This document shows, piece after piece, positions 15,801-38,200 of a DNA stretch of 64,000 bases. Both the position numbers and the translations under genes were made by a program. The notes below the pieces were generated by a model. It did not search any database. It was not told where the DNA came from and worked only from the letters and a program-made list of their open reading frames with translations. Location of the stretch: positions 1,178,001-1,242,000 of the forward strand of contig JBLDXI010000048.1 in the NCBI GenBank assembly GCA_047495785.1, given 5' to 3'. The stretch is from Lepidodermella squamata. Its lineage: Eukaryota > Animalia > Gastrotricha. Position 1 is the first letter of the stretch, and each line of letters starts with the position of its first letter.

Positions 15801-18800
15801 TGCGTGCAAAGTCAGTCAAATTGGCGTGCGGCCAAGGCCTAAATCGCGATTTCCGAAGCCGATATCGACACGATCGGCGGCGAATTTGGGCAGCGGCCGC
15901 TGATAGTTTGTACAGAATTTAGAGGGCTATCCGCCGATACAAGAATTATGGGCCGGCGATACTTGGTTCGCGCTGAAATTGCGTGCAAAGTGAGTCAAAT
16001 TGGCGTGCGGCCAAGGCCAAAATCGCGATTTCCGAAGCCGATATCGACACGATCGGCGGCGAATTTGGGCAGCGGCCGCTGATAGTTTGTACAGAATTTC
16101 GAGGGCTATCCGCCGATATAAGAATTATGGGCCGGCGATACATGGTTCGCGCTGAAATTGCGTGCAAAGTCAGTCAAATTGGCGTGCGGCCAAGGCCAAA
16201 ATCGCGATTTCCGAAGCCGATATCGACACGATCGGCGGCGAATTTGGGCAGCGGCCGCTGATAGTTTGTACAGAATTTAGAGGGCTATCCGCCGATATAA
16301 GATTTATTGACCGGCGATACTTGGTTCGCGCTGAAATTGCGTGCAAAGTGAGTCAAATTGGCGTGCGGCCAAGGCCTAAATCGCGATTTCCGAAGCCGAT
16401 ATCGACACGATCGGCGGCGAATTTGGGCAGCGGCCGCTGATAGTTTGTACAGAATTTAGAGGGCTATCCGCCGATACAAGAATTATGGGCCGGCGATACT
16501 TGGTTCGCGCTGAAATTGCGTGCAAAGTGAGTCAAATTGGCGTGCGGCCAAGGCCTAAATCGCGATTTCCGAAGCCGATATCGACACGATCGGCGGCGAA
16601 TTTGGGCAGCGGCCGCGGATAGTTTGTACAGAATTTCGAGGGCTATCCGCCGATATAAGAATTATGGGCCGGCGATACATGGTTCGCGCTGAAATTGCGT
16701 GCAAAGTCAGTCAAATTGGCGTGCGGCCAAGGCCAAAATCGCGATTTCCGAAGCCGATATCGACACGATCGGCGGCGAATTTGGGCAGCGGCCGCTGATA
16801 GTTTGTACAGAATTTAGAGGGCTATCCGCCGATACAAGAATTATGGGCCGGCGATACTTGGTTCGCGCTGAAATTGCGTGCAAAGTGAGTCAAATTGGCG
16901 TGCGGCCAAGGCCTAAATCGCGATTTCCGAAGCCGATATCGACACGATCGGCGGCGAATTTGGGCAGCGGCCGCGGATAGTTTATACAGAATTTCGAGGG
17001 CTATCCGCCGATATAAGAATTATGGGCCGGCGATACATGGTTCGCGCTGAAAATGCGTGCAAAGTCAGTCAAATTGGCGTGCGGCCAAGGCCTAAATCGC
17101 GATTTCCGAAGCCGATATCGACACGATCGGCGGCGAATATGGGCAGCGGCCGCGGATAGTTTGTACAGAATTTCGAGGGCTATCCGCCGATATAAGAATT
17201 ATGGGCCGGCGATACATGGTTCGCGCTGAAATTGCGTGCAAAGTCAGTCAAATTGGCGTGCGGCCAAGGCCAAAATCGCGATTTCCGAAGCCGATATCGA
17301 CACGATCGGCGGCGAATTTGGGCAGCGGCCGCTGATAGTTTGTACAGAATTTAGAGGGCTATCCGCCGATACAAGAATTATGGGCCGGCGATACTTGGTT
17401 CGCGCTGAAATTGCGTGCAAAGTGAGTCAAATTGGCGTGCGGCCAAGGCCAAAATCGCGATTTCCGAAGCCGATATCGACACGATCGGCGGCGAATTTGG
17501 GCAGCGGCCGCGGATAGTTTGTACAGAATTTCGAGGGCTATCCGCCGATATAAGAATTATGGGCCGGCGATACATGGTTCGCGCTGAAATTGCGTGCAAA
17601 GTGAGTCAAATTGGCGTGCGGCCAAGGCCAAAATCGCGATTTCCGAAGCCGATATCGACACGATCGGCGGCGAATTTGGGCAGCGGCCGCTGATAGTTTG
17701 TACAGAATTTCGAGGGCTATCCGCCGATACAAGAATTATGGGCCGGCGATACTTGGTTCGCGCTGAAATTGCGTGCAAAGTCAGTCAAATTGGCGTGCGG
17801 CCAAGGCCAAAATCGCGATTTCCGAAGCCGATATCGACACGATCGGCGGCGAATTTGGGCAGCGGCCGCGGATAGTTTGTACAGAATTTAGAGGGCTATC
17901 CGCCGATATAAGAATTATGGGCCGGCGATACATGGTTCGCGCTGAAATTGCGTGCAAAGTCAGTCAAATTGGCGTGCGGCCAAGGCCCAAATCGCGATTT
18001 CCGAAGCCGATATCGACACGATCGGCGGCGAATATGGGCAGCGGCCGCGGATAGTTTGTACAGAATTTCGAGGGCTATCCGCCGATATAAGAATTATGGG
18101 CCGGCGATACATGGTTCGCGCTGAAATTGCGTGCAAAGTCAGTCAAATTGGCGTGCGGCCAAGGCCAAAATCGCGATTTCCGAAGCCGATATCGACACGA
18201 TCGGCGGCGAATTTGGGCAGCGGCCGCTGATAGTTTGTACAGAATTTCGAGGGCTATCCGCCGATACAAGAATTATGGGCCGGCGATACTTGGTTCGCGC
18301 TGAAATTGCGTGCAAAGTGAGTCAAATTGGCGTGCGGCCAAGGCCTAAATCGCGATTTCCGAAGCCGATATCGACACGATCGGCGGCGAATTTGGGCAGC
18401 GGCCGCGGATAGTTTATACAGAATTTCGAGGGCTATCCGCCGATATAAGAATTATGGGCCGGCGATACATGGTTCGCGCTGAAAATGCGTGCAAAGTCAG
18501 TCAAATTGGCGTGCGGCCAAGGCCTAAATCGCGATTTCCGAAGCCGATATCGACACGATCGGCGGCGAATATGGGCAGCGGCCGCGGATAGTTTGTACAG
18601 AATTTAGAGGGCTATCCGCCGATATAAGAATTATGGGCCGGCGATACATGGTTCGCGCTGAAATTGCGTGCAAAGTCAGTCAAATTGGCGTGCGGCCAAG
18701 GCCAAAATCGCGATTTCCGAAGCCGATATCGACACGATCGGCGGCGAATTTGGGCAGCGGCCGCTGATAGTTTGTACAGAATTTAGAGGGCTATCCGCCG

Positions 18801-19407
18801 ATACAAGAATTATGGGCCGGCGATACTTGGTTCGCGCTGAAATTTCGTGCAAAGTGAGTCAAATTGGCGTGCGGCCAAGGCCAAAATCGCGATTTCCGAA
18901 GCCGATATCGACACGATCGGCGGCGAATATGGGCAGCGGCCGCGGATAGTTTGTACAGAATTTAGAGGGCTATCCGCCGATATAAGAATTATGGGCCGGC
19001 GATACATGGTTCGCGCTGAAATTGCGTGCAAAGTCAGTCAAATTGGCGTGCGGCCAAGGCCTAAATCGCGATTTCCGAAGCCGATATCGACACGATCGGC
19101 GGCGAATATGGGCAGCGGCCGCGGATAGTTTGTACAGAATTTCGAGGGCTATCCGCCGATATAAGAATTATGGGCCGGCGATACTTGGTTCGCGCTGAAA
19201 TTGCGTGCAAAGTCAGTCAAATTGGCGTGCGGCCAAGGCCAAAATCGCGATTTCCGAAGCCGATATCGACACGATCGGCGGCGAATTTGGGCAGCGGCCG
19301 CTGATAGTTTGTACAGACTTTAGAGGACTATCCGCCGATATAAGATTTATTGACCGGCGATACTTGGTTCGCGCTGAAATTGCGTGCAAAGTGAGTCAAA
19401 TTGGCGT
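872..19407 (+). repeat. 179-bp tandem satellite DNA array, ~103.5 monomers
   Basis: Head-to-tail monomer ttatacagaatttcgagggctatccgccgatataag...gggcagcggccgcggatagt. Equivalent positions 947 and 19384 are exactly 103x179 apart. Monomers differ only by substitutions at about 15 recurrent sites plus a few singletons. Confidence 0.99.
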
Positions 19408-20538: not shown

Positions 20539-20640
20539 AAACACAATAGATAGTTGTTAACCGCAGTAATTTTTTCTTGCATTATTGTCTGAGCAAATAC
20601 GCCCTCAGATCACGAGAGGACGCATCGCATAAATAGCAAC
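20539..20640 (+). promoter_or_regulatory. Conserved proximal promoter of acidic precursor gene A, with TATA-like cataaatag
   Basis: gtctgagcaaatacgccc.cagatca.gaga...gcatcgcataaatag and aaacacaatag.ta.ttgttaacc are shared with ~25835-25935 upstream of the paralogue, while the introns have diverged. Confidence 0.6.
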
Positions 20641-20670: not shown

Positions 20671-21259
20671 ATGAGCCGAATTTACCTTGTGATCGCAATT
20701 GCATTCTTCTTGTTGGGAGCCGTCCTTTCGGCTCCGCTGAAGGTTTGTTAAATACTTTGAGATGATGTTTGTATCCTCACCATAAAGTTTCGACATAGTC
20801 GGCTGAATCGAGCGAAGATCCCGCTTCTAACAGCGACTCGAACAGCGCTGATTCTCAGGAAGATGTGAAGAAACAGCAAAAACGTGATACGCAAGCTGTT
20901 CAAGACGTTAGTCTCTTCTAACACTCATATTTCCACAACATATTATTGCCAATTCGTTTAACGCAGTCTTCTGCAGAATCCAGCGAAGAGAAAACTGCAC
21001 AGAGCGCGGAAGAAGACAACTCATCGGAGGAGGATGTTAAAAAGCAAGTCAAGCGTGATACCCAGGCAGCTAAGCAGGTAGGATATGGTTATAGCTTTCC
21101 CTAGATATCCCCATAACCTGGGTTCTGTCTCACTAGGATTCGAATTCTGCTAGTAACTCAGCCGGTTCCAGCGTTGAGGCTTCGGCTGAGGTTGGCGCAC
21201 AAGCGAGTGCTGAAGATTCATCCGCCGAATCGTCTGAGGAAATCAAGCCATCGGCTTAA
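20671..21259 (+). CDS. Secreted acidic Ser/Glu/Ala-rich precursor protein, paralogue A (137 aa)
   Basis: Exons 20671-20742, 20799-20906, 20967-21077, 21137-21259, all phase-0 GT-AG. Signal peptide MSRIYLVIAIAFFLLGAVLS-APLK; repeated SAESSE(E) and DVKKQxKR-DTQA. AATAAA near 21359. Same exon structure in paralogue B. Confidence 0.9.
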
Positions 21260-22258
21260 AAAGTCTCGGCCTTTAGAATCAATTTTAACTATAAATATCT
21301 GACCTTTTTGCCCTATAACTTCGAGAAATTTCGAGCATTTCAGCCCACTTGAGGTCAAATAAACGGCTCACCTTTTGAGAATTAGGTATGTTTGCTATTG
21401 ATCATCGATCGGAGACATAATATCTGCAGGTGAAATAATTAGCCAAATCATTGGGCGTGGGAGATGGCGATATAATACACTAATATTCAGGATTCTAGAT
21501 TTTCTAGAATAGCATTGAGTCCTATATATTCCGGTATACTACGTGGTATGCCACAAAATTGAAGGTTAGGAGAATCCAGGATAGGGAGAAGTGTAGTTTC
21601 CAAAAGGACTGTTGCCTATTCATGTGCTGAAATGTCGAAGGGAGCGGAACGGAATCTTGCTAAAAGTGAAGGTAGCAATTGCTTACGTTCGGGAAAGCCC
21701 GTTTTACAGGGTAGAGAATGTGCAAAATCGATCTCAGACTGGTAATATTGAAATGATTATCTTTATTTCGAAAAATATACTACCGGTAAAAAGAATTCGT
21801 GGTTCCAAAAGCGGGCACGCAGGCTGTGGTCTGGTCGTCTGGTGACTTGGCGGTGCCGTATGCGTCACGTGTAACTGCGGAATCGTAACGGATTGAACTT
21901 TGAACGGCGCTTGAATCCTGTCGGGTCAAACTCAGCTCTGAACTTGAAAATGCTCACGAGTCTATTCAATAGGTCACGGGATGCATTCATTTGTGCCACG
22001 TGCCATATATGTTATGTAGGAGATGTGGCTCAATAGACGATATGAAAAACAGAAAACAAAGGTGTGAGACAACAACGCTTCATCATCTTGAATTTATTCT
22101 CAGCGACTTTCGGATAATAGTTATAATAGGCAAAAGCATGACCAGGAAGTAGGAACTGAACTCTATTCTGAAGGAAGGGGGAGAGGAATGAGCGCAAAAA
22201 TTGTTAAGAGTTAGGAAGATTCCAAGGTTATTGAAACTCCGACCCTCTTCGGTTCCAG

Positions 22259-23905
22259 TTACCATGCTACTACGCAGCGTTCCGCCATCCGGGAGTTGAG
22301 CAAATCCCAAGTTCCAGCTGAGAATTTGCTTCTTCTGCTGAATTTGAATCGGCTTAAAAGTCCACCTTTCCGTGCGAACTGATCACATCTCTCAAGAAGA
22401 AATTTGAAAACAGATTCGCGGCCATGCTCTGCAGCCAAATTTAGAGCTGTCTGATTTAATGTTCTCCCGATGAGGAACATATCAGCACCGTTAGCCAGTA
22501 GAATTCTCACTGCGTCCAAGTATCCGGCTTTGGAAGCGTACATCAGCGCAGACCAAGATTCGGAATCGACAGCATTCACATATGCCCCGCGGGAAAGTAA
22601 AAGCCTGATCATAGCAGCGTCATTGCTCTTCGTAGCGTAATGAATTGGCCTCAGCTGTTGTTTATCGAGCGCATTAACCCTTGCTCCGGCATCGATTAGG
22701 ACCTTTGCGAGTTCGATGTTGGAATTCCAAACTGCAGCCATAAGAGGTGTCCTCCCATGTCCATCTCTAGAATCAACATAGGCTCCTTCTTTCAGCAAAA
22801 TTTGCGCAATTTCGGGTCTCTTATACCCGTCCTTAGTGCAGTAAGCAGTAATGAACAACAAGGTAAAGTCGTGAGGACCTGGTTGTTTGCATTCGTCAAA
22901 TTGATGGGGCCAACGCCAGTTAGGATTGAATTTGCCATCTTCTTCTTTGATCCTTTTAATGAAGTGTGTAACACCGGTAACATTGGCCTGGACGTCCAAG
23001 CGGTAGGCGAGCCCCTGATACATGCAGCCAATCGGGTCCAGCCATGCGGCTAATCTTTCCTGAAAAGTAAATATGAGTAGATTGTTTTTTATCATACTGA
23101 TACTGATACTGATACTGTTTTATTTTGCAATTTGTCTTTCAACATTTAGCAATTAGGAATTAACAAAACGTTAAGTTATGGCGCCTCACCACAGAAATTG
23201 TGTATTTTTCCAAGTCAGTACATTTAAGATATTTCAAGAATGAAGAATACGAATTATTAACGACGGAAGATGGTAGCCTGTTCCAAGCTGGACGCACTCG
23301 CCTCACAAATGAAAACTGAGAGCTGGCATGACTGTAGCTTTCCATCGTAACAGAATGATGCGGTAAGCGCGGATTAGTGGAAATATTAAAGAAGTCAGAG
23401 AAATTTAAGTCCACAGCACGCTGGTACATTTTATGACATAACGCAAGATCGTGTTGGTAGCGTCTTAATTCGAGTGAACACAAACCAAGCTTTTTTAGTC
23501 GTTCTTCATAGGAGGAGCCTTCGATCGATGAGTAGTAGGTACTACGATATAGCAAACGTTTTGTGAAGCGGATTTGAATCGATTCGACCTTTTCAATATC
23601 TGTTATTAGGTAAGGTGAGTAAACAGACGGGCAAAAGTCAAGACGAGATAAAGTATACGTTTTATAGGCTTTGAGACGTAAGGATTTAGAGGCGAACGAT
23701 TTACAAATAACACCGTTAATTCTGTGGCATTTAGTTGCCAATGCGTTACAGTGCTCAGAGAAGGTGAGATTTTTATCAATAATTATTCTATTAATCATAA
23801 TAGAGAAATATTCACATCTTTAAATTTCATGACAAAACTTGTACATGCTTCCGCCGAGTAAAATGCTTGGCAGAGTATCAGCACTAAAATCCAGCATGTA
23901 ACCAT
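22259..23905 (-). CDS. Ankyrin-repeat protein with predicted signal peptide, copy 1 (~296 aa)
   Basis: Exon 1 23905-23816 (MVTCWILVLILCQAFYSAEACTSFVMKFKD, donor GTGAAT) joins in phase 0 to exon 2 23059-22259 (acceptor ttttcag). About 5 ankyrin repeats (GRTPLMAAVW, RPIHYAT, SALMYASKAG, TALNLAAEHG, LLxxGAxVN). Confidence 0.85.
23093..23798 (-). mobile_element. 5'-truncated non-LTR retrotransposon (CR1/L2-like RT C-terminus) in ankyrin intron 1
   Basis: ORF 23160-23798 has IIIDKNLTFSEH, YKTYTLSRLDFCPSVYSP, IEKVESIQIRFTKR, YEERLKKLGLCSLELRR and FSFVRRVRPAWNRLP, typical of the CR1-group ORF2 end. It is followed by AATAAA and a (CAGTAT)4 tail at ~23117-23094. Confidence 0.9.
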
Positions 23906-24268
23906 TTTCAATCAATAGCGAGCTACATAATGTGCACAGCCATCCACGATGGATCATGAAAAATGTTAGTAACCACGCGATTCAATCACGCGATGAATTT
24001 CAATGATTTCAAGCCGCGTCAAACTGATAGGTTATTCAAGTTCTTCCCTTCGAGCTTTTGGCAAAATATATGTGAGTCCCGGCATCATTAGAGTTTATTA
24101 TTAATTAGCATCTCATATCGCAGAGTGTCCTATGCAGCTACCCCGTGATCTCTTTTGTTAAATTAGGATAGGTTTCTATTTCAATAAATGACCTAATTTT
24201 AACACATATCAGTCAAGGGCTGGTTGATTGATGAAGCCTAGAATGGGCGGTGTTCTGTATGTTTGGGT

Positions 24269-25235
24269 TTAGGGGCCATAACAATTCATCCAGCCCATTT
24301 TTCGCAATTTCCAAACATTTCCAAAAGCTTTCCAAACTTCGGTACTGTAACCAGCGAAGTCTTCCTGTCCAAACTGTATCCTGTATAGTTTTCGATTGGC
24401 TGGCTGAGACTTCCCTTTGCAGTGCTCAAGGAGTAATTTCACGATTTTAACATGACCCCTTTCTGCAGCATGATGAAGCGGCGACATGCCCGAACTGTCG
24501 CACAATGGCACTGCGGCTCCATTTGCGAGCAGCAACGTTACGATTTCAATGTAACCATCTCGAGCTGCTCCCATCAACACTGTCCAGTTAACTCTGTTTT
24601 GATAGTTAACATCAGCTCCTCGGGATATCAAAAGCTTAAACATTTCGATGTTCTTCGTTTTTGCAGCGAAATAAATCGCGTTTTGGGTATGGATATCGAC
24701 AGTTGTGACATTCGCTCCAGCATTCAGTAAAACCGCAGCCAATTCGACATGTTCATTCCACGCCGCTGCCATGAGAGGTGTGGTATCGTCGCCATCTCCA
24801 GCGTCAACATGAGCGCCTTCTTTCAGAAGAATCCTCGCAATTTCGGCCCGCTTTGCAGAGTGGCCTGTGCAGTAGGCTGTGATGAACAAAAGAGTAAACT
24901 TTTCAACAGCTGGACTTCCGCAACCGTAAAAGTAGTGCGGCCAACGCCAATTTGCGTCGAAATACTCATCCTCTTCGTCCTTGATCTTACGGATGTATGC
25001 TTTGACTCCAGCAACATTAGGCTTCACGTCCAGGCGATTGGCAAGCTGCCAATCTACAGGCTTGAAGTCAGGTCAGCAAAATATCTCTGTTTAAACCAAA
25101 CATCGGTAATAATTCTCAAATTTCAAATAAACAAACGTCATTCATTTCTACAATTTTCCGCGGACAGCATTGCGTCAAATCCATCGCTAGGGATAAGCAT
25201 ACCAAGGTGGAGAGTTGTAGTGATAGGTAAGTCAT
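24269..25235 (-). CDS. Ankyrin-repeat protein with signal-like exon, copy 2 (5' junction uncertain, possibly frameshifted)
   Basis: Body 25027-24269 is paralogous to copy 1 (NWRWPH, FTLLFITAYCT, EIAxILLKEGA.VD, TPLMAA.WN). Exon 1 25235-25137 encodes MTYLSLQLSTLVCLSLAMDLTQCCPRKIVEMND with donor GTTTGT. The nearest acceptor (exon start 25086) is out of frame. Confidence 0.7.
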
Positions 25236-26029
25236 TTCTCAAAACTTTTGTTGACGAATTTGGATAGTTTGAAAGGGCGAAGTGGAATGCGGTGGTGGGA
25301 TCATGGAAGAATTTAACAATTCAAATTAGATTCGAACCCAACCCACTAAATCACATGATAATGCCGGGTTTTTTCTGACCTCCTGATTCTCATGAAGTTA
25401 TTCTCACGAAGTAGAATACAATTATATAAACTCAATTTCAAAAAGTCCTAGCTGGAAACAAACTGCTACGACATTATATGAATAATGATGGAAACGAAAA
25501 TACATTTGAAAGTACGACTTTATTATAGGGCACCGAAATAGCATGAGGAATCTTTGGGTCTCAGTGCCCTCAATTAGGAAGCGCTTATGCATTGCGTGGA
25601 AGTGATTTAACAGAGTGCATCACGTACGTCCGCGTATTGTTTGACCCCTCAAGTATTTGACCCCTTAAAACGGCTCTGAATTGCTATGACAACCTGCAAA
25701 GAAACCTATCGGTTGCAGAATGTATTTTTTAGATCTACTCTCTAAATAAACAAATTAAAAACTAGGTCACGTCATGAAAAAACTTGGCATGTTTTTTTAC
25801 GCGCCGTCAAGATTTGGGTTCCGATTTTCTTTCAAACACACAATAGCTAATTGTTAACCACAATGATTTTTTTTTTCTTGCACCGTCTGAGCAAATACGC
25901 CCACAGATCAGGAGACAGCATCGCATAAATAGGAAACAAATCCAGTATACTTTGTTTTGTTTAGCGTTATAGGCACGTTTTCCAAGACCATTAGAGACAT
26001 TTTTTGTTTTAGTTTTAGAAAATCCCAAA

Positions 26030-26607
26030 ATGAGCCGAATTCATCTTGTTGTCGCACTTGCATTCTTCCTGCTGGGAGCCGTTCTATCGGCCCCGCTAAA
26101 AGTTTGTTGATAAGTTCAGGAATTGCCTGTACCCTAAAATAAATGTTGTATAGTCGGCGGAATCCAGCGAAGAGTTGGCTTCAAACAGTGACTCGAACAG
26201 TGCTGATTCTCAGGAAGACGTAAAGAACCTACTGAAGCGTGACACGAATGCCGCTCTAGACGTTTGTCTACTTTGATATTTTCATACTGCGACTGAAAGC
26301 TTCTATTCTGTTAAATTCAGTCTTCGGCAGAATCCAGCGAAGAAAACGCTGCGCAGAGTGCGGAAGAAGACCAGTCTTCGGAAGAGGACGTTAAAAAGCA
26401 AGTCAAGCGTGACACCCAGGCAGCTCAGCAGGTAGGGTAGTTTGTTCTCGATGGGCACATAACCTGGGAATTTTCCCTCGTTAGGATTCGAGTTCTGCTA
26501 GTAACTCAGCCGGTTCCAGCGTTGAGGCTTCGGCTGAGGTTGGCGCGCAAGCGAGCGCTGAAGATTCATCGGCTGAGTCGTCCGAGGAAATCAAGCCCTC
26601 GGCTTGA
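26030..26607 (+). CDS. Secreted acidic Ser/Glu/Ala-rich precursor protein, paralogue B (137 aa)
   Basis: Exons 26030-26101, 26154-26261, 26321-26431, 26485-26607, identical in length and phase to paralogue A. MSRIHLVVALAFFLLGAVLSAPLK...KRDT...KRDTQ...SSEEIKPSA*. Confidence 0.9.
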
Positions 26608-27112
26608 AAATTTCCCGGCCTTTGTGAACGATTGTAGAACTAAATATCCCGCACCCTATGAATAGTTCATAATTGCATGCTATAAGATTAGTAAAAAATC
26701 TATATCTGAACCTAGCCGGCCAAGATTGACGAATTGGAATAACCGGTGGAGATGAGTAAATCGAGTACGGCAGGTAAACGACATACGAGTTTTGCATCGT
26801 TAAACTTTAAATTTCCACATATAATCGGCCTATGATCTAGTAGGCAATTCAATATTGGTAAGCAATATCAAGTTTTCATTGCAGCCATTCCATCAAATAA
26901 ACTTCCAAATTCTTTGGACTTGGGAGTTATCAGTCATCATCTTCATCGCGTTTTCGTAACCTTCGCATGCGCAAGCCTGTTTTATGGAATACCTGCAGTT
27001 TCCAGAGGACAGAGGACGTGTCTCCATGTTAGCTAAGAAAGTCGACTATATCGGATAAAGCCGGCTCTATCTGGCAAAAAAAAATTAAAAAAAAATAATA
27101 ATAAAAATAATA

Positions 27113-27234
27113 ATGCGCCAATGAAAAATTTTATAAATCAAAATATGTTTGACCCCCATGACCTAGCGGCACCGATACTATGAGGGCATGTGGGTCAAAC
27201 ATATTTTGATTGATAATATTTTTTATTAGCGCAT
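27113..27234. repeat. Inverted repeat / hairpin with ~48-bp arms
   Basis: atcaaaatatgtttgaccc pairs perfectly (19 bp) with gggtcaaacatattttgat; imperfect pairing extends out to atgcgc...gcgcat. Confidence 0.85.
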
Positions 27235-27518
27235 AAAATTAATCAGTGGCACACTCGTCCACCCTCAGCTATTCCTGGTCTGCTAAAAATTTGTCTGCTA
27301 GCCGCAGCGACGTAAGGCGAAGAATCCATGAAAAAGCTACAGCGAATAAATACAACTCGATAATTGTTTCAAGTGTCTGACGGCTAGAAAGAAGCTTAGT
27401 CATCTATGTAAATTGCATGCATGACTTCCTCCTAACAAATAGACCCCGTTTATCTTGATTCCCATTTAGCTGATGGTATAGGAAAAAATTCAACTGTAGA
27501 TAATAGAGCCTGTGCATC

Positions 27519-28215
27519 ATGCTATCGAATAGGTTTCTTTTTCTTCTGATTGTCTCATTTTTGTTTTACTGCAGCTTATTTGCAGCTCCTTTACAGGTAT
27601 TTCACTTGATTTCAATGCATCAAACTAATCTGAATACACACACCGTAACAGGATTCTCCAGATGACGACAGTGGGTTAGTAGATAAAGATTCTAAAGCGG
27701 GAAAATGCCGAAATAACGCCGATGTTTATGATACTGCTGCTGAGGACACATCAGATCTGATTGACCAAGATGACAACTTGATCTCAGAGGCAGATGATCT
27801 CAACAACCAGCATCTGATTTTCAAGAGAGCTCCAGGGAAATCAAAGGAAAAGGGCGATAAGAGCAAGCATGGAAAGAGTAAAGAGAAAAAGGATTCGAAG
27901 GAAGACAAAAGCAAGTCCAAGGAGCGCAAAACCAAGCCAACTTCAACCTCGAGCACAACCACGTCGACAACATCTACCACGCCCACATCTACCTCCTCTA
28001 CTACGTCAACTTCAACTTCTACCTCAACCTCAACTACAACAGCTACAACAACTTCAACTAAATCAGCATCGACAACTGCTTCGCCTCAATCGACTCCGAC
28101 TTCAACTGCTAAAAATCAGGCGACAACATCAAGGTCTGAACTTAGCATCCTCCTGTTACTCGCAATTGCATTCCCCTCTGTTTTGGGTTTTGGCCAACTG
28201 TGCTTGACCTTTTGA
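27519..28215 (+). CDS. Secreted/GPI-like protein: acidic N-region, Lys-rich block, Ser/Thr stalk, hydrophobic tail (~213 aa)
   Basis: Exon 1 27519-27596 (MLSNRFLFLLIVSFLFYCSLFAAPLQ, donor GTATTT); exon 2 27652-28215 in frame with track ORF 27778..28215. AATAAA directly after the stop. Confidence 0.85.
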
Positions 28216-28730
28216 CAATAAAAAGAGGTATCTTGCTAATCCAGAATGGACCCTCTCCTTTTCATTCGAAATCAGAATTAATTTGTTATCTATCTCTTTA
28301 GCTAGACTGGAAACATTGGCAAATGAGAAGCTCGCTCTAGAAAAGCAGCGACAGGCAATTCTGAATGTACAGCCTTCATCGACTTGAATCACGATCCAAA
28401 AAACGAGTTGCCCACCCTACAAGAACGTGATTACCTCGCCGAAAATATCCATGGTTTACCTTTCAGTTGACAAGTACATATTTTTTATTGAATCTTGCGA
28501 GTGATACTTACCTTGTAAAAATAAATGACTGCTTAGCCTCATATAAAAAGACTCGACCACTTCGGTTTAGGCAAACACAGGCTCGCATTACTCTCTTTCA
28601 GGCAAACCTGAGATTATTTACTAGTAACGATGATTCTTGAGTGGCGCAGATGCTTTTTTCACTGCACTACATGTCCTACAGGGTATTAAATCGCTACCGA
28701 GTTGGCATTACGGCGGGAAGTTTCTGATCC

Positions 28731-29264
28731 ATGAAAGGCGTGTCTTTTCAGCTGCTTCCACAGGAAGTAGTAAGAATACCGCACCAACATGGCGGAAGTC
28801 AAGTCCTTGTCCAGTTCAACGCACCCGAGCCGGAGACGCCCCGGAGAAATTCATGCTGTTCAGCTAATTCCTTACTTCAACTTTTCGCCTTTTTCTTATT
28901 CATCGTATGGCTGGTTGTTTTGCTGAAATTTGTCCCTTTTCCTGGGCCAATTGATCAAGATTCATGTGAAAATTGCCAAGAGTACAATCCGGCTGCGATG
29001 CAGAACGAACTAAACAGGTTATCTCGCCAACTCAACTACACTTTGGAGGTATTTTTTTGAAAAATGTCCCGACATTGATAAAAAAAATATGTTCAATAGG
29101 ATTTTCAGCAAATTAGACGAAGGAATGCGTCCTCGGCAATTATTGCCCAGATTAGCCATTACCATTTCGATGAAACGGGTGCGCAATCTGCGGAAGAAAA
29201 TGATGACTATGAAGACGAAAGTGAAGAATCAGTCGGAATTGGCTCTGTGATTACTCCAGACTAA
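28731..29264 (+). CDS. Small type II membrane protein with short coiled coil and acidic tail (~160 aa)
   Basis: Exons 28731-29048 and 29100-29264 (phase 0, 51-nt intron). TM LLQLFAFFLFIVWLVVLL, CENC, heptad MQNELNRLSRQLNYTLEDF, basic RRR, tail QSAEENDDYEDESEES. AATAAA near 29295. Confidence 0.75.
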
Positions 29265-29328
29265 CAATTGTCTTTTATTTAAGCTGGAATGTCAAATAAA
29301 ATTATCACTTTGCTTTCGTCATTATTGG

Positions 29329-30131
29329 TTAACTATCTGGCTCATTGAGAGCCCCATCTCGTCGCCATGGCCGATTTCCACCGCTCGGATATCTTTCGCG
29401 GCTTCTGTCGTTGTGATAGTTGTTATTGTTCCCGCCTAAACCGACGCTGACAGAAAACCCCGGTGTTAACTGATAAGTAATTGAAGCTGGCGGCCTTGGT
29501 CTTTGCGGTGGTCTGTTGTAAACCACAACGGTAGCTGTTATTTAGACAATAATCCACTTTAAAGATGAATATTCTGACTCTTAGAATGACTCACGTGGAG
29601 AGGGTGCGATAGGTCGATATACTACCACAGGTGGCGGCGGAGGGGGAGGGTTGTAGACGGGAACTGGGTAGTAAGTCGGAGGGGGTGGTGGCCTATAGAT
29701 AACCACTGGAGGTGGGGGTGGCGGCGGTGGATAGTAAACAGCAGGGGGTTGATAATACCCATCACTGGCCGCATCTCCGTCCCATACCCAAGTTGGGCCA
29801 GGGGCTGAAAAGTGAACATTTCAAGAAAACTTGTGCATTCAAAGCGCTTTTCTTACAGTTTACGTAGACTGGTGGGGCAGGGGCAGGCGGAGGTACCTGT
29901 AAAAGCTCTAATGATCGGAGAACTCAGATCGTAACGCATCCTTACATAAACAGTGTCTCCATTTGGAAGATAGATGATCTGTTGAGGTCGCCGTGTTGTT
30001 CTTCTAATGATGTACGTATTAGGATCGCCATCATCAGTCTGAACAATCACAAGACTGCGATTTGTCTGTGAGTTTTGAGCTGTCGCGAAGGATAGACAGC
30101 ATCCTAGGATGAGGCAAACAGCTTTCAACAT
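29329..30131 (-). CDS. Secreted Pro/Tyr/Val-rich (extensin-like composition) structural protein (~213 aa)
   Basis: Exons 30131-29946, 29896-29857, 29804-29595, 29534-29329 with consistent phases. Signal MLKAVCLILGCCLSFATA; repeats VYYPPPPPPPP, VVIYRPPPPP, VYNPPPPPPP, VVVYRP. Confidence 0.85.
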
Positions 30132-31276
30132 GATTTTTCACAGAAATTCAACAAGTGAAGGAAAGAAGGGTTCTTACACCAAACCATCAGCACGCATTAT
30201 TCGTGTTCAAGTTTTTTCTCTGCTTTGGCAGTGTGTCTGACTCTTTCTCAAGCTAAAGCCGCGTTATTTAGATTCCCTGAGATTCACGGATAACAGCCAC
30301 GTGTTACTTGATGAGAAGAGTAATCCATTCAAATTAGCATCTGCCCCCATGAACACGACGCATATCGGTGTTTAAAGTTCATTTCATTTTATTTTAGTAT
30401 CCTTGGAAGTTGGTGATTCATTCAGAAATTTCAAGAATGACGAAGAAGAATACACGGCGTATGAAAATTTCACGGCCCATTTAGTGTGGTTTCGGTGTTT
30501 ATGATACGGTCATCATGTATGCTAATGTCACCTGCTGCCTCGCTAGAACGCACAAATTACAAGCATGGCAGGAAAGAAGAAAACCGCACACATATACCTG
30601 GATAGCTCGATTATTCATTGGTGCAAGGTACGCGCATCTTTTTCCAGGCATATGTCCAGGCATACCCATGACTAGCCTCTGTGCCGAACGTGTGCTCGCT
30701 AATGAGACATCGCATATTCGCCGCGTTCCTATGTGATGATACGCCCACCTGACAGCGAACAAAAACCCATCGCGCTGTGTTTACGCGCATACATTTGGCT
30801 ACTACGCCGAAGGCCATTTTACGCCACACAGCGATGAGACAATGAGAAAAAATGCGGCAATGTATTGTCCCTACAACCTACGTACTTGTTATGTGATTAT
30901 AGGGGTTTAACCTAATTTTGAAAAATTCAGAAAAAAATCTGAATAACTCAATCTTAAATGTCCTCATTTCGGATTTACTGAGAGATTATTCGGAATTTTT
31001 ATAGATTTTTGCGATAATTTTTCGGATGATTCCAGTTCTGGCAGCTTTTTTTGAATAAAAGAACCATTTTCCTATTTGGCCATGGTCAATAACAATAAAA
31101 AATAAGCCGTGTGGCCGCGACTGGGCTCAGGCTTCGGCATATTACCTACGGATAAGATGATAGTAAACACGCCTCTCTGCGTACACGTCGTTGTAATTAA
31201 CTAGCGCTTCTGAGCAAGAGTCGGCATCGCGACACGAAGTTATAACAAGACACCTCTGCGCGGCGCATACCGCAGA

Positions 31277-34200
31277 ATGGCGCGGTCCGATAGTTGCACT
31301 CACCCATATGCGGCGACGTGCTGGCTCTTGATCGCTCTCATATCGGCAACTGTTTCCTTGCCGCTAAAGGTGAGTTTGCACCCTTCAAATTTGTTACCTT
31401 TTGAACTCAATGATCCTGTTGTAGGAAAAGAAGTACGATGATGGTTTTGTCATGATTTTCGGCGCCGATTTAGCCTCAGATTTAGCCAATAGGCCGATTT
31501 ATGTGGCGAAAGAGGAACGAAGCAGGGTGGTTAAGCAGTACCAACGGGAGACTACTACCAGATCGAAGACTTTCACTCACCCTAATGTACCGAATAACTA
31601 CCAGTTGGATCAAGTTTGCAACGGCTGGTTAAATGAGCAAATAGCAGCATTAAGCCGGACAACGTGGAAATTTCCGGATATTTTCGCGACAAGTGGCACT
31701 ACGCCACGGACGACTACAACGAAGAAACCAGAGGAGTGGGAGTTCTTTTTCGAGGACACTACCGTACGTCGAACCACCCAGAGAAAAACTACTCCGAACG
31801 ATCTGCGAACACGAACTCCGCATCAATCGACTGACGATTGGACTGTTTTCATCGAGGAAATCACTCAAAGTCATACTACGCCTCAAACGATGACGAAGAC
31901 TACAAATTGGTGGGAAGATCAGTGGGCTAGACGAACTACTACAACTAAAGAAATTATTCATAATCCTTTCTTCAGTACAACACCTTCAAAGAGGCCGACT
32001 TCCACTACAGAGAGAATTGAAGACACCGCTACAACTTTAATTTTAGTTGAGGAGACCACTGCTGCGAGGGAGACCGAATCGATCACTCAAAGGCTGACAA
32101 CGACCCTGCTGGTCACTAAGGAAGCTGAGACAACCACTCATCAAGCTGAAACTACGATGATTGCGACCACGGAGATGCCTACTCAAACCACAGGAAAATC
32201 CCGAAATCAAGAAACGACGTTGAGAACATTAACAACTGGAGCTTACGAGACTACGGCCGAGCCAGAAATGACGACTGTAGTAAAGGATTTTGAAACTACT
32301 TCGATTGCTCATACTACGCCAGTGGTTGAAACCACGAAATCACCTACGACGTTGAGATCTGGATCGACTTTTGCGGCTACTTCAACTCAGCAAGTTAAGC
32401 AAGGCTTCGAAACTACTATTAGACTGAATATGGACAAAGGAACCACAGCTGGGCAATTAACGACCCAGGTTATTACGACTTTGAGATCTACTCCGGCTGA
32501 GGCTACTACGATTCTAGAAGAAACTACTGCTGCCATTACTACGGCAGAAACAACTAATCAACCAGAGACTACTCATGCAGTATCGACTGCGGCTCCGTCA
32601 ACACTTCAGCTGACGACAACGACTCCGGTAACAACAACTACTACTGCTACTGTTACTGTTGCCAAAACCACTGAAATGCCAACGACAACTACTCCACTGG
32701 CAAAAACGGCCACAACTACTGTAACTATTCCAACAACCACTGAACGGTCTACAACGACTACTACTGTTACTACAACCAAGGCTACGACCACGACTACCCA
32801 AGCTCCAACTACGATTGCTTCAACTATGGCTGCAACAACAGCTCAAGAAACGACATCCCAAATCTTGACTTCAAAGCTATTAGCTGAAACCACTACAGCT
32901 CACAATGAGGTTACAGCGACGAGAAGAGACCCGATAACAGTCATCGGAGTTGCTCAGCAAACAGCTAAAATCGAGACGACAGCTGTTGCTTCAACTACAT
33001 TGGCAAATAAGGAGACGACGGTTTATCCTTCGACTGAAGCGCCTGCGACTACTCAGGTTTCAACCACGATCCACCACGAAACTTCGAAACCTCTGTTTGA
33101 TATGATGGATTTGAGCAATGTTACTGATATTCATGCGCAGAATGTTAGCAGGCCACCTGTCATACTCTGGCCTGCTGGAGGAAGGGTTACTCTACAGCCG
33201 CTTGAAACTCAAAAGCCTTCTAGAGCTTCTACAGTTGGCGTTACGGTTACTGAGAGCAGTTACATTTCGAACTACAGCAGATCGACTGTTCCTGAAATCA
33301 GAATAACCACCTCTGCCGAAAATAGGTCTTCTGAGGTCACTACAACTTCAGCGTATCACACTACAGCAGTTTCAAGCACTGCCAGCAGACTAGAAACAAC
33401 TGCTTCAGTTTCTGCTAATGTGACTACGACGCCTTACAAGGCTAATGGAACTAGACCAGTGATTCCGGACATTAGAATAACCCCAGGGTCTTGGTGGTTG
33501 AGCCAACAACAATCTACAACCACAACTCAGAAGACATCAATTGAGGGAAATACCACTGTACATACCACTGCACATACCACTCAGCAGTCAATTTCGAGTC
33601 ACGCAACAAGTACTTCGTCATATTCCGTCACTACGGCTGAGGTTACCCATTCAGCTTCGAATCACAGCCGACCCGCGATTCCAGAGATACGAATTACTAG
33701 TGAGAAGGCAAACTCAAGCTCCACAACATCCCGTCCTCTGAATGTAACCAGCTCAACGTCTTCTTCTGAAACTGTTACTTCAAGTTCCTCTCAAACGACT
33801 GCAGAGCTGCTCACGACGACCAACTACAAAGCTGGGTCTAGGGAGCCTATCCCAGAAGTTCATATTACTCGTCCTACGAGCACCGAGAATCAAACTTCCA
33901 AGGCATCAAACTACACCGGCACGACCTCATCTCCAGAATCAACAACTTACCACTTGGGAACGAGAGGCAACGTACCTGAGGTTCATGTCACTCGACCTAC
34001 GAGCGTCGAAAATCAAACGTCCAAGGTATCAAACTACACAGGTACGACCTCATCTCCAGAATCGACAACTTATCACTTAGGGACGAGAGGCAGCATTCCT
34101 GAGATTCATGTCACACACCCTCCTAGCTCAGAAAACCATACATCAGTCCTACATACGCCGAGTCAACTGAATCAAACCGAAATTTCGTGGTCTGAGATTA

Positions 34201-34625
34201 CTGCTGCTTGGTCGACCACTTCAACTACTCCTCGTAATGTAACAAGAGGAGAAGTACCAGAGATTCGAGTGACTGGTACCTCAACTAGTACAACCCAATC
34301 GAAATATGAGGAAACGACCAAGGTAGTTGCTTCTACCACCTCAAAGGCTGCGTTTCATGGAGTTCGGGTCGAAGTGGCTCCCGCGGCAAATACAACGCAT
34401 AATCATGAGACGACAACAAGTCGAACGACTCTACCTATTGAGGAAATTTTGTTGGAAGATGTAGGAGGCAATTCTACGAACTTCACGGTTCCTGAGATCA
34501 AAATTTCAACCGGTTCACCCCAGGCGTCGCGGAATTCGGCGCCGAGTCTACTAGTATTTTCTGTTCACCCTATTGTGACATTATTAGTTTTAGTTTTAAC
34601 CAACCTCAAATCCCGGATCATGTAA
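31277..34625 (+). CDS. Large Thr/Ser-rich mucin-like surface protein with hydrophobic (GPI-like) C-terminus (~1097 aa)
   Basis: Exon 1 31277-31369 (...CWLLIALISATVSLPLK, donor GTGAGT); exon 2 31425-34625 in frame with the 1057-aa ORF. Thr-rich, many NxS/T sequons, 41-aa (123-bp) internal duplication, hydrophobic tail. Confidence 0.9.
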
Positions 34626-34715
34626 AAACCTGACTTCATGTTTATAGTTTTACAACTCTGTGCTGTGTTTCGGTATTTTATAAAACTTTGAAAAATAAAG
34701 GTGACAAATAAAGGT

Positions 34716-35267
34716 TCATTTTCTCGGCCTAACGCCTTGCTGGTTCAACTGTGACGTGTAAGATCTCCAGTCGTTGACCCATTGAGGAGGCGGCTGAGGT
34801 CTGTAGACCACTGCTGGCGGCGTTTGGGGTCGATAGATGTAGACTGCCTGAGGCGCCGGTGCTGGCTTGTAGATGAAATGAATGGATCCTGATTCATGGT
34901 GAGGATAAGCCGAGCCTTCGTAGATGTAAACTGTGGGTGGACGAGGTTTCCACTCCGGAGCTGGGGGTGGTAAAGTAGCCGGGACGTAGAATACCTGGGG
35001 TCGAGTCGTTGGATCTGGACCTGGATTCGGTTGATAGTATAACGGTGAAGGAGCTGGGGCTGGTCTGATGCGCAAAATGTCATGGCCGTAATCATCATCA
35101 TCGTAGGTTGGAGTTAGCATAGGAGGAACATAATCATAGCCATCCACTTCTGTAATCGGGGTAAATTCAAAATTAAGACTGGTGAACCACGAAAACTAAC
35201 CTCTCAGCAAAGCGTTGGTTCTAACGCAAGCTATTAGTAAAATAATAATATACCTGGTATACCACAT
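34716..35267 (-). CDS. Secreted Pro/Tyr/Val-rich protein (~166 aa)
   Basis: Exon 1 35267-35201 (MWYTRYIIILLIACVRTNALLR, phase 1, donor GTTAGT); exon 2 35149-34716. Motifs PTVYIY, QAVYIYRP, PPAVVYRPQPPP resemble the gene at 29329-30131. Confidence 0.85.
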
Positions 35268-38200
35268 TTCGAGTTTGTGAAAAACAAACTTTTTTAAAGA
35301 AAACGTTTGATGCAGAGTGATGTGTGGGATGTGTTTACTTAGCTTCCCACCCCTCAAACAAAGTTTCGCAAAATGATCATGCTATTGCAGTTTTGAGACT
35401 TGAAACCATCCATGATTCATTGAACATGAGCTATTTTGATCAATCGCGGAGCAATTGCCCAAGTAATCATTTAAGGAATTGATCCTCATTAGATGTTCTA
35501 TGTAAATTGCTTGGATCGTGTGATCAATCGGCGATTAAATATCACAAAATTGATCCAAGTTTGATCTTTACTGTTTTTTCGTATTTTTTGATCTATATAA
35601 AAGATCTATTTTTGATCAGATTTTCACCGTTTTTTCCGGAGCGAGGTATCTACCGATTTTAAGGTCAAGCGTTTTACCGTTATTTTTGCGTCTCATTTAT
35701 TCATTTATTTATACTCACTAAAATAATGTTTACCCGTGCGTCGTTTCAAGTGACACTTCAGAGTGCACAGTTTGTTTTCACATGAAAATGATCCATCATA
35801 ATATCGTTCATTTTGCTACTAATTGCGCTTTCATCATGCGCAGAGTACAGGTAGGAATGCGACACAGTCGGTAATAAATAACAATAATAATTATTTCTCG
35901 TCATTTATATGAAGATGACACGTTCAAATAACGGCGAGTTTACTCAGCAGATGATACGCTGTTGAAATAGCTAGAATGGTTAGCTACCTAAATAAGGACC
36001 TAGCATGCGATAAGAATAATTGACATGTCGCATTTGGCACGTACAACCGGTAAAGCGGTAAGAAGTTTTCAAGCAAATGACAGCGTGGATGATGAGGAAA
36101 ATAAACGAACGGTATCAAAGCTGATGGAACAAATAACCACAAAAAATTGAGCATCCAGCTTAATAAAAAGTATTCCCATATTCATGTCCCAATGCTGAGT
36201 TGACAAAGAGTACTGCCGAATTCATGGGCTAGAAATGGCTAATATGGCCCCTCTATTTGTACTTTGTTAATATTTCGATGACATTTGGTTTCATGAATTT
36301 GATCCTTATTTGATCTTGTGGGGTTTCGCACTCAAATTCTGTTTGTTTGAAAACAAGTGTAGACTTTTTATCATCTTTCATCTTTCAGGTCATTAAGTTT
36401 GATGTTTTTTCCGATTAGGACACTCTTTGGCTCCTTTGATAGGTCACGCATATTATTTGTAGCCACCTTAATTTTGCAAATATTTTTTCGCACCTCGCAA
36501 GTGATTTGATGGAAAAACAAACACGGCGATGAACAAAATTAAGTGCCGTAATATTACGGTTCAGTAAAATAGCCCATTGACGTCAGCGATCGCATGTACT
36601 CTAATTGCGTGAAAGGGCCGGCTATTAAAAATGTTGTTAAAACTATTTGTCACTAAATATATAAGAGAGCGCGAGCAGCGATCATCTTCTATTCCTGCTC
36701 GTTCAAGCGTGACGGACATGGCATTAAATAATCGCTGTTTTATTTTTGCTCACTCTCAAGAAATTCAAGTCCAATAAATCAGCCTTGACCTATTTCACCA
36801 CCTCATACTGCGATTTTTCTGTTTTGTCCATTTTTGTATTTGTTGAATAAACCGTGAGATATTCGATTTTTATCTCAACCAGACAGTACCTATACCATCT
36901 ACCATTTTATGAATGAAGGTAAACATTGATTCACATTAGCGAAAATGTTGTGGAAAAAGGCCGAATCGCGCGGTCTTATTTGTAAACATATATTTTGTAA
37001 CGAGTGTTACATAAATTATTATTGGTAAATACCGTTTCGCCTCGATTAGTTGCGCAGAAATAGATAGCACAGAAAAGCGATCGCTGTTGATAGCAAGGTA
37101 TCACATTTTTGTTTCGGTTTCATTCGAGCTATTATCATAGATAAGGCTAACGCTTCTTCTTGTTATTCCCCAGAATACTTTTGTATTTGCGCTTCAATCT
37201 CTGGTTATACACAAAAAATGAGGTTATTTCCCATTAATATTGAGCTGAATGCTGAAGGCTATTTTTTTGTCCAGCTGACAAGTCCACCTTAAAAATGGTT
37301 TTTATCAATATTTACCCTGCTAACTGACATATCGATCATTTTTTCTCGCGTCATCTCGAGCCAGTATCATACTCTGGACTAAAAAAGCGATGATTGTATT
37401 ACTTTTTCAAGTGTCGCATTTGCTCATACCTGCGTGCCAATTTAGACGGGCGGTAGTTTGATGACAAAAGCGAGCGACATCTTATACTCGGCGACTGTAA
37501 TATATTTTATTGGATATTAAACGCTGTGTCAACTTACAACTACTACCTACATTTATTACGACAGGGACATAACGCGTGCGATTTATTATTAATAGCCCAA
37601 TAGTATAATATGAAGTATAGGATAGGGTTATCAAAAGGCGCCGATCTCGTATAATTGTTGTCATCAACACACTTTTGTGTATTAGATTGAAATATCGAAC
37701 AGATCACCCTGTGCCGCGTACAACACACCCTGCTCTACTACGACAGGTGATATTATTGTTTTCTAATTGTTTTCGTAACACATTTTACGCTTTCAATCAA
37801 AAAGGTATATAATCGCGCACACAGGGACGCCACACACTTGCGCGCGTGTGATAATAATAAAAACCGCGCGCGCGCTGGGTGCGCGCAATATCCGCATCCT
37901 ATAAACGCGATTTTATAGTTGTCATTTTCTTTGTTATTCTAATAATTATTATATCAAGTTATATATTGCACCACCGCTGACCCACACCGGTGAATATTAC
38001 ATCCTATATACAAACCCAACTACAAATTTTAGTCACCCTTTCATTTGAAGAACCACCTGTTGTTCGTCAACAAACTCGAAATATTTTCAGAATTTTCTCA
38101 CGCCCGTGCTAATTTTTCTTGTTATCTTTTAATTTTCTCAACATTCGTCCGCTAATTTTTGGGAGAGTTCAGAGTTAAACAATGCATTGAGAACGGCTGT

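Follow-up and report, generated by a model that had tools for sequence, protein, structure and literature searches.

Nine gene models were rebuilt in the interval 20671-35267 of the analysed window, a 64,000-nucleotide stretch of Lepidodermella squamata DNA. They form a compact neighbourhood of 14.6 kb, the limits of which are the exact ATG codons of the first and the last model. All nine translations are free of internal stops and all introns run from GT to AG; 13 of the 15 introns measure 49-60 nt, one measures 76 nt and one 756 nt. A hydrophobic leader opens eight of the models (Kyte-Doolittle mean of 2.6-3.7 over the best eight residues), and small residues occupy positions -3 and -1 after it, while the ninth, G6, has no leader and contains one internal membrane span. 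Leaders and anchors were called from Kyte-Doolittle hydropathy alone. Homology searches were run exon by exon, and composition, hydropathy, dN/dS and codon choice were assessed on the spliced models. A Pfam search of the interval revealed ankyrin repeats as the sole domain, and an Rfam search of 19.4-45.4 kb detected no RNA genes. The cluster lies between a satellite of 29 kb and a 10-kb stretch free of genes, and the gap between G7 and G8 (30.2-31.2 kb) consists of unique DNA with no repeat.

The first gene, SSEE-1 (G1, 20671..21259, forward strand; exons 20671-20742, 20799-20906, 20967-21077 and 21137-21259), and the fourth, SSEE-2 (G4, 26030..26607, forward strand), have the same four-exon layout and each encode 137 amino acids with a pI of 4.3 and 4.1, respectively. 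In SSEE-1 the leader precedes an acidic body rich in Ser and Glu, which includes 15 S-x-E sites and has KRDT conserved at two sites; SSEE-2 contains 16 S-x-E sites. All introns of the pair are in phase 0 and the exon lengths (72, 108, 111 and 123 nt) are each divisible by three. Leader, S-x-E sites and phase-0 introns are features that the pair has in common with SCPP genes. The two genes are 86% identical in their exons and about 66-70% identical in their introns, and the pair is under purifying selection (dS 0.55, dN 0.063, dN/dS 0.11). S-x-E sites are about four times commoner than composition predicts: the 15-16 observed sites compare with 3.8-4.2 in shuffled sequences, and none of 2000 shuffles reached the observed count. 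Matches to the Fam20C family above the Pfam cut-off were found elsewhere in the genome, at three tandem loci on contig C7. Near the SSEE genes no SPARC-like neighbour was found, and no similarity that would point to descent from SPARC-L or SPARCL1 was detected, in Pfam or otherwise.

Two reverse-strand genes, Ank-1 (G2, 22259..23905; leader exon 23816-23905, main exon 22259-23059) and Ank-2 (G3, 24269..25235; leader exon 25137-25235, main exon 24269-25060, separated by the 76-nt intron), encode proteins of 296 amino acids that are 47% identical. Each contains four ankyrin repeats above the Pfam cut-offs (PF00023/PF12796; E 5e-30 for Ank-1 and 7e-31 for Ank-2). In both, a leader mini-exon is spliced to one long exon that encodes an N-W-R-x-P cap and then the ankyrin repeats. 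This is the architecture of the genome's signal-peptide ankyrin family, which is dispersed across the genome with more than 200 matches and to many copies of which Ank-1 and Ank-2 are 33-39% identical. Unlike most sampled paralogues, the two form a divergent pair without the C-terminal ...S-R-x-x-x-C ending. Leader-like first exons were also predicted by hydropathy upstream of the paralogues L002, L004 and L005. Judged by sequence, Ank-1 and Ank-2 are members of this genome-wide family with signal-peptide exons, and their export is predicted. The leader exon of Ank-1 was located by a scan of frame, phase and hydropathy; the chance of meeting such an exon in comparable non-coding stretches is about 4% for Ank-2 and 16-20% for Ank-1. 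A search for a homologous leader exon of Ank-1 by DNA similarity to Ank-2 yielded none.

The 756-nt intron 1 of Ank-1 owes its length to a 695-bp fragment of a young, 5'-truncated non-LTR retrotransposon (23094..23788, reverse strand), which is 99% identical at the DNA level to other copies. Removal of the fragment would leave about 61 nt of intron, the usual size for this genome. The insertion parts the leader exon from the main exon, and the fragment lies within the interval in addition to the nine genes counted here.

G5 and G8 show the predicted features of membrane-anchored mucins, namely a leader, a Pro/Thr/Ser-rich stretch and a C-terminal anchor. G5 (27519..28215, forward strand; exons 27519-27596 and 27652-28215) encodes 213 amino acids (S+T 33%), arranged as leader, acidic head, Lys-rich block of mixed charge (pI 7.7), Ser/Thr stalk and hydrophobic C-terminal tail. 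This 24-residue tail ends the protein and is GPI-signal-like in its hydropathy, with T-T-S-R-S and a short spacer before it. The large mucin G8 (31277..34625, forward strand) is encoded by a leader exon (31277-31369) and a 3.2-kb exon (31425-34625) of 1066 open codons. Its 1097 amino acids include about 1000 residues with 25% T and 10% S. The protein carries 20 N-x-S/T sequons and, within its last 450 residues, the motif [VI]-P-[ED]-[IV]-[RHK]-[IV]-[TS] eight times, and it closes with a C-terminal hydrophobic membrane span and KSRIM after it. Exon 2 had 0 matches at E<=0.001 among 1.84 billion representative proteins, and a metagenome scan with the N-terminus gave no relative. An AlphaFold2 prediction of the N-terminus without alignment had a mean pLDDT of 34, a value that shows neither disorder nor fold. 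Homology between G5 and G8 was rejected, as neither the N-terminal nor the C-terminal parts outscored shuffled sequences.

G6 (28731..29264, forward strand; exons 28731-29048 and 29100-29264) encodes 160 amino acids with a span at approximately residues 41-75. The RR on the N-terminal side of the span suggests a type II membrane protein, and the C-terminal part is acidic with 2 N-x-S/T sequons. The model also includes a short upstream ORF between a TATA-like box and the ATG. Only sub-threshold leads (0.81-0.86) were obtained for G6 in the protein atlas and these were not used. A metagenome match to exon 1 was discarded as spurious, since the contig has a prokaryotic gene layout and the match covered the hydrophobic span alone.

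The remaining two genes encode Pro/Tyr/Val-rich proteins on the reverse strand. G7 (29329..30131; exons 29946-30131, 29857-29896, 29595-29804 and 29329-29534) yields 213 amino acids with a pI of 9.2, 23% P and 8% Y, and its leader ends with A-T-A before Q. G9 (34716..35267; exons 35201-35267 and 34716-35149) yields 166 amino acids with a pI of 8.6, 19% P and 10% Y; a protein atlas search with it returned nothing usable. Both contain repeated hydrophobic-Y-x-P-P-P stretches, joined in G9 by Y-x-Y triplets, and the two align better than shuffled sequences (z 5.5). Despite the proline runs, the Ser-Pro4 block of extensins was not found in either model.

Synonymous codon choice leans towards the coding set of the genome in all nine genes (z 1.0-3.7). 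That G5-G9 are functional genes would rest on ORF length, splice-site regularity, poly(A) signals seen by eye nearby and this weak codon signal. In the 121-Mb genome SSEE is present in no more than the two copies of this cluster, and G6, exon 1 of G7, the N-terminus of G8 and G9 in one copy each; G5, G6, G7, G8 and G9 are, by these searches, single-copy orphans. The original prediction had portrayed nine consecutive genes with a leader or an anchor, ankyrin repeats as the only recognisable domain, and a mixture of acidic SSEE, Lys-rich, Pro/Tyr-rich and mucin-like products, all secreted or on the cell surface and specific to the lineage. This portrait was borne out by the eight leaders and one internal span, by Pfam and by the composition of the models, with secretion or surface location agreeing as far as hydropathy can predict it. 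Lineage specificity likewise agrees with ANK as the sole Pfam hit, with the one or two genome copies and with the lack of relatives of G8 and in two metagenome scans. The additional notion of a secretion system is baseless because no enzyme, transporter or machinery gene was found in the interval.

The gene products are predicted to be taxon-restricted and to enter the secretory pathway. We consider it somewhat better than even (probability roughly 0.55) that the interval is a local hotspot of young genes for surface and secreted proteins that has grown partly by duplication. In such a hotspot the SSEE proteins would be exported, and a Fam20-type kinase would phosphorylate their S-x-E sites and so turn them into small polyanions; perhaps they would also be cleaved at the conserved KR motifs. 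G5 and G8 may be heavily glycosylated membrane-anchored mucins of an apical coat, and G7 and G9 may act as basic Pro/Tyr-rich matrix proteins, for which tyrosine cross-linking or binding of polyanions is conceivable. Ank-1 and Ank-2 would be ordinary members of the large signal-peptide ankyrin family that are located here by happenstance. From their predicted features, the products probably add jointly to an extracellular coat, which might be the cuticle or glycocalyx, the egg envelope or a gland secretion. A run of exported products of opposite charge would, however, equally be expected of a true kit.

Such a kit, in which all nine genes are co-regulated and lineage-specific and serve a single material (cuticle or scales, eggshell, glue) assembled by charge and cross-linking, had been the reading offered by the original prediction, and we regard it as rather unlikely. 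It would fit the predicted export or anchoring of all nine products, the tight packing of the genes between the satellite and the gene-free stretch, the opposite charges (pI 4.1-4.3 versus 8.6-9.2) and the similarity between G7 and G9. It also gains from a bipartite word, TCTGAGCAA-N6-GCATCGC (31209..31230, forward strand), which precedes the ATG of G8 by about 50-70 nt. Both halves recur upstream of G1 (20588-20628) and G4 (25886-25924), these three matches are the only ones in the genome, and the leader exons of the same three genes all end in P-L-K before a phase-0 intron. However, the pattern was chosen post hoc from those three matches, and by our estimate a shared 9-mer is expected by chance among these promoters, with roughly 5% for the added 7-mer. 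Homology of the promoter and leader exon of G8 to those of G1 and G4 could not be established, as short words are all that they have in common. Across the cluster, the best 7-mer occurs in four and the best 8-mer in three of eight independent upstream regions, which is within the range of shuffled sequences, so no word is common to all upstream regions beyond expectation. Ank-1 and Ank-2 are members of a dispersed family, the cluster lacks a modifying enzyme, and no second, paralogous cluster of like make-up was found elsewhere in the genome. Co-regulation as a kit was therefore not upheld.

A different function for the SSEE pair alone, unrelated to the neighbouring genes, would be that of prohormone-like precursors cut at KR into three acidic peptides for signalling or granule packing. 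A leader with conserved dibasic sites flanking conserved peptides is what a prohormone would display. The four repeat copies, encoded by exons 2 and 3 in both G1 and G4, all keep K-R-D-T unchanged, compared to eight amino-acid changes between the paralogues in the remainder of exon 2, and the last 40 residues after the final KR contain a single difference. Nevertheless, every K-R is preceded by Q, L or V and never by the G of an amidation site. The predicted peptides are 28-47 residues long, very acidic and without an aromatic or hydrophobic core, which sets them apart from typical neuropeptides. Moreover, the excess of S-x-E points to phosphorylation as the constrained feature. We consider this function unlikely.

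A purely coincidental run of neighbours, with some of G5, G6, G7 and G9 as recent de novo ORFs of little function or none, appears quite improbable. About a third of animal genes encode a leader or a membrane span, and with each duplicate pair counted once the cluster comprises seven independent loci, so that a genome of 15-20 thousand genes would be expected to contain a few such runs. No paralogue or relative of the orphans was detected, and the 29-kb satellite adjoins. This is countered by the regular intron sizes, by reading frames kept across 3-4 exons, by the open 1066-codon exon of G8 and by the positive codon-usage scores of all nine genes. Furthermore, five unrelated low-complexity exported genes next to each other are far rarer than a run of any exported genes.

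A literature search revealed no work at the protein level on gastrotrich cuticle, scales, eggshell or adhesive tubes, and the list of intact orphan genes for putatively exported proteins offers defined targets for proteomic work and in situ hybridisation.

Co-regulated clusters are known from insects, such as the Drosophila Sgs glue genes at 68C and the chorion clusters, in which shared enhancers are proven and the genes are expressed in a single tissue. The present cluster resembles them in its small, intron-poor and in part divergently oriented genes, which are spaced within a few kilobases and encode Thr-rich, mucin-like or Tyr/Pro-rich products with predicted export. It differs in that no common motif was found in its upstream regions and in having no sequence relationship to them. 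Pro/Tyr-rich cross-linked proteins include plant extensins as well as the CPLCP-type cuticle and vitelline-membrane proteins of insects. Like these, G7 and G9 are basic, rich in Pro, Val and Tyr and predicted to be exported, whereas they lack the Ser-Pro4 motif and any chitin-binding or other domain, and no homology was found.

The flatworm proteins for temporary adhesion, Mlig-ap1 and Mlig-ap2, are multidomain and of very large size, and they combine Lys/Arg regions of extreme pI with lectin, vWD and other domains (PMC6410801). The corresponding adhesion model postulates a small, negatively charged, secreted release factor, which was never identified (PMC6410801). The products of the cluster are likewise orphans of high charge with predicted export and glycosylation, and flatworms are a duo-gland group close to gastrotrichs. 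In contrast to Mlig-ap1 and Mlig-ap2, lectin- or vWD-type domains are absent here and the Lys block of G5 is of mixed charge. SSEE peptides, if phosphorylated, would resemble the postulated factor; that the cluster supplies parts of a duo-gland temporary-adhesion or surface-coat chemistry, with the SSEE polyanions as release factor and with G7, G9 and the mucins as cohesive and cell-side partners, nevertheless seems highly improbable to us.

The closest parallel to the SSEE pair is provided by the vertebrate SCPP genes, which encode caseins, enamel proteins and SIBLING proteins and whose products are Fam20C substrates (PMC9122587). Both groups have a short leader exon followed by exons that open with S-x-E, an acidic, disordered body, phase-0 coding introns, exon duplication (exons 2 and 3 in SSEE) and local gene duplication, and Fam20-family kinase genes are present in this genome. 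The S-x-E density of SSEE is 12.8-13.7 per 100 residues, compared to a reported 1.7-5.1 in Scpp and Sparc-L regions (PMC9122587). Unlike SCPP genes, G1 and G4 have no detectable homology to the family and no nearby SPARC-like parent, and the animal is unmineralised. We class SSEE as an SCPP analogue and not as a member, with phosphorylation inferred, because sequence similarity and a SPARC-like neighbour are lacking and the host is an invertebrate. The pair is an invertebrate, non-mineralising look-alike of the vertebrate SCPP genes and, because Fam20-type kinases are encoded in the genome, would represent a clear-cut example of Golgi-kinase substrates that evolved convergently.

All nine gene models were rebuilt manually and then checked by script. 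Each of them translates cleanly across GT..AG introns, and the limits of the cluster, 20671 and 35267, correspond to the ATG of the first gene and the ATG of the last. Thirteen of the 15 introns measure 49-60 nt, one 76 nt and one 756 nt. Synonymous codon choice is biased towards the coding set of the genome in every gene (z 1.0-3.7), which is a weak but consistent coding sign. Export of all nine proteins was predicted by hydropathy alone. Eight have a hydrophobic leader at the N-terminus, after which small residues occupy the -3/-1 positions, while the small membrane protein G6 contains a single internal span. Two Arg are located N-terminal to this span and two N-x-S/T sequons C-terminal to it, a predicted arrangement that fits a type II topology. 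The leader exon ends before a phase-0 intron with P-L-K in G1, G4 and G8 and with P-L-Q in G5. At the C-terminus, the Lys-rich mucin G5 has a bare, predicted GPI-like hydrophobic tail of 24 residues and the large mucin G8 a span followed by KSRIM. The start of G6 is the least certain of the nine, because a 19-codon upstream ORF (start 28631, in window 28541-28690) lies between a TATA-like box and the ATG. A Pfam scan of whole ORFs and single exons revealed no domain beyond ankyrin repeats. The original prediction of nine consecutive genes with a leader or membrane anchor, lacking recognisable folds other than ankyrin repeats, was thus confirmed, as far as hydropathy and Pfam can predict.

The cluster is clearly bounded, by a satellite on one side and an ORF-poor stretch on the other. 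The directly adjoining satellite array of ~29 kb consists of a 179-bp unit, with 103 copies at 875-19407 (Tandem Repeats Finder; 96% matches between copies) and an upstream extension to about G000:C48:1168377. One- or two-unit copies with 74-94% identity also occur on many other contigs, which suggests that the unit may derive from a dispersed element. Beyond the array (G000:C48:1158001-1168000) we observed a trypsin-like protease ORF, a C2H2 zinc-finger ORF, a kringle-like exon, an EGF/CUB-like exon and a leader-bearing ORF; these neighbours are mixed and not uniformly exported. On the opposite side, the region at 35.3-45.3 kb yielded neither a notable ORF nor a match in Rfam. This AT-rich stretch of ~10 kb (35300-45380, GC 0.34-0.39) lies upstream of a neurexin gene starting near 45.4 kb and is probably its regulatory region.

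The evidence establishes the gene structures, selection on the acidic Ser/Glu-rich SSEE pair (G1 and G4), its S-x-E excess, the presence of kinase genes and which genes are orphans. For the remainder we infer, with a probability of about 0.55, a young secretory-pathway gene neighbourhood that grew partly by local duplication of the SSEE genes, the ankyrin genes and perhaps the Pro/Tyr-rich pair.

The original prediction had interpreted the cluster as a co-regulated kit or secretion system. As the interval contains no enzyme, transporter or chaperone gene, the latter reading is not sustained. Regarding common control, we compared the 250 nt upstream of each gene, and the best 7- and 8-mers common to these regions remained within the range of shuffled sequences; a cis-element uniting the nine genes did thus not emerge. 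The bipartite pattern TCTGAGCAA-N(5-30)-GCATCGC speaks for co-regulation, as its three matches in the whole 121-Mb genome are all located upstream of G1 (20588-20628), G4 (25886-25924) and G8 (31209-31230), on the coding (+) strand, compared to 0 and 1 matches for the reversed controls. However, the pattern was picked after the sites had been seen, and by our estimate chance alone would produce a 9-mer common to these promoters, the added 7-mer having a chance of ~5%. The pattern is therefore only a lead, and a true co-regulated material kit appears unlikely. No paralogous cluster was detected elsewhere in the genome.

Genome-wide searches, which covered the 121.2-Mb, 151-contig animal assembly containing the window (G000:C48:1178001-1242000), revealed exactly two SSEE copies at both the DNA and the protein level. 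In both genes, the four exons measure 72, 108, 111 and 123 nt; all introns are therefore in phase 0, and exons 2 and 3 are internal duplicates. Identity between the copies amounts to 86% in exons and about 66-70% in introns (dS 0.55, dN 0.063). Together with a dN/dS of 0.11, this excess of exon over intron identity indicates that both copies are maintained by selection. The mature proteins have 117 residues, net charges of -15 and -18, and 15 and 16 S-x-E triplets compared to 3.8-4.2 in composition-preserving shuffles, none of 2000 reaching the observed values. The resulting density of 12.8-13.7 per 100 residues compares with 1.7-5.1 in vertebrate Scpp and Sparc-L regions (PMC9122587). Three tandem multi-exon loci at G000:C7:2760273-2780864 match the Fam20C family of secretory-pathway kinases above the Pfam cut-off, and the S-x-E-reading kinase class is thereby predicted to be present in the genome; the three loci may be of the protein-kinase or the xylose-kinase type. 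In the neighbourhood reading, the SSEE proteins would be exported phospho-polyanions of the Fam20 type. Alternatively, they could be prohormone-like precursors, which would be compatible with the neighbourhood reading as regards the remaining genes. In keeping with processing, each of the four SSEE repeat copies contains an unchanged K-R-D-T, and the paralogues show a single difference in their C-terminal 40 residues, but no Gly precedes the KR sites of either protein, and we regard a precursor function as quite unlikely.

The two ankyrin proteins, Ank-1 (G2) and Ank-2 (G3), are 47% identical and belong to a family with >216 matches scattered across many contigs; they are members of this dispersed family and not specific to the cluster. 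An N-terminal cap is common to the sampled paralogues, and at least three of them (L002, L004, L005) have a leader-like first exon. In L001, L003, L006 and L007 (contigs C4, C64 and C73) the conserved cap contains D-P-N-W-R-N-P, and many family members there terminate in S-R-G-A-x-R-x-x-x-x-C, the Cys being C-terminal. The leader exon of Ank-2 lies 76 nt upstream (chance rate ~4% of comparable non-coding tiles). For Ank-1, scanning for an ATG, an open frame, a phase-0 donor and a hydrophobic core yielded one candidate at 23816-23905, which is weak if taken alone (chance rate 16-20%). The 756-nt intron of this gene harbours a 5'-truncated non-LTR retrotransposon copy of 695 bp (23094-23788, minus strand) which carries a (CAGTAT)n tail and is very young (99% identity to the copies on C85, C17 and C15); its family has >150 protein matches, including some open frames of ~960 aa that look full length. 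Without the insertion the intron measures 61 nt, the usual size here, and the Ank-1 leader exon is therefore strongly supported. Within the neighbourhood, both ankyrins would be bystanders.

Exon 1 of G6, exon 1 of G7, the N-terminus of G8 and G9 matched only themselves in the genome. A search of 1.84 billion representative proteins with the 1066-residue exon of G8 gave no match at E<=0.001, a protein atlas gave no usable match for G6 and G9, and a metagenome scan gave none for the G8 N-terminus. The only metagenome match of G6 exon 1 lay on a contig whose genes are arranged as in prokaryotes and was rejected as spurious. The proposed lineage specificity is hence supported as far as these searches reach. 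Single-sequence AlphaFold2 modelling of the G8 N-terminus reached a pLDDT of 34, a value that speaks for neither a fold nor disorder. The last 450 residues of G8 (~650-1060; window 33380-34600) contain eight copies of [VI]-P-[ED]-[IV]-[RHK]-[IV]-[TS], spaced by 41-78 residues within a Ser/Thr/Asn-rich stalk, usually preceded by [ST]-R-x-x, the last directly before the membrane span; Tandem Repeats Finder detected the two youngest repeat units. The motif may serve in cleavage, docking or strand formation. The mucins G5 and G8 have nothing in common beyond Thr/Ser runs; in the neighbourhood reading they would form anchored, glycosylated components of a coat. The alignment of the Pro/Tyr/Val-rich proteins G7 and G9 exceeds that of shuffles (z 5.5, 0/300), suggesting a common repeat grammar or distant kinship, and both would act as basic Tyr/Pro matrix proteins. 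About a third of animal genes have a leader or membrane span, so seven independent exported loci in a row are not rare in themselves; five adjacent unrelated, orphan, low-complexity exported genes are much rarer. Chance neighbours, some of them non-functional de novo ORFs, are very unlikely.

Compared with known systems, the SSEE genes operate on paper like SCPP genes but differ from them in descent, and are therefore an analogue. Insect glue and chorion clusters have a similar layout, together with a proven common control that the present cluster lacks. The model of flatworm adhesion proposes that release is brought about by a small anion that is secreted (PMC6410801). The predicted phospho-SSEE peptides would match this description, and by analogy they might, as a long shot, represent a release factor of this kind.
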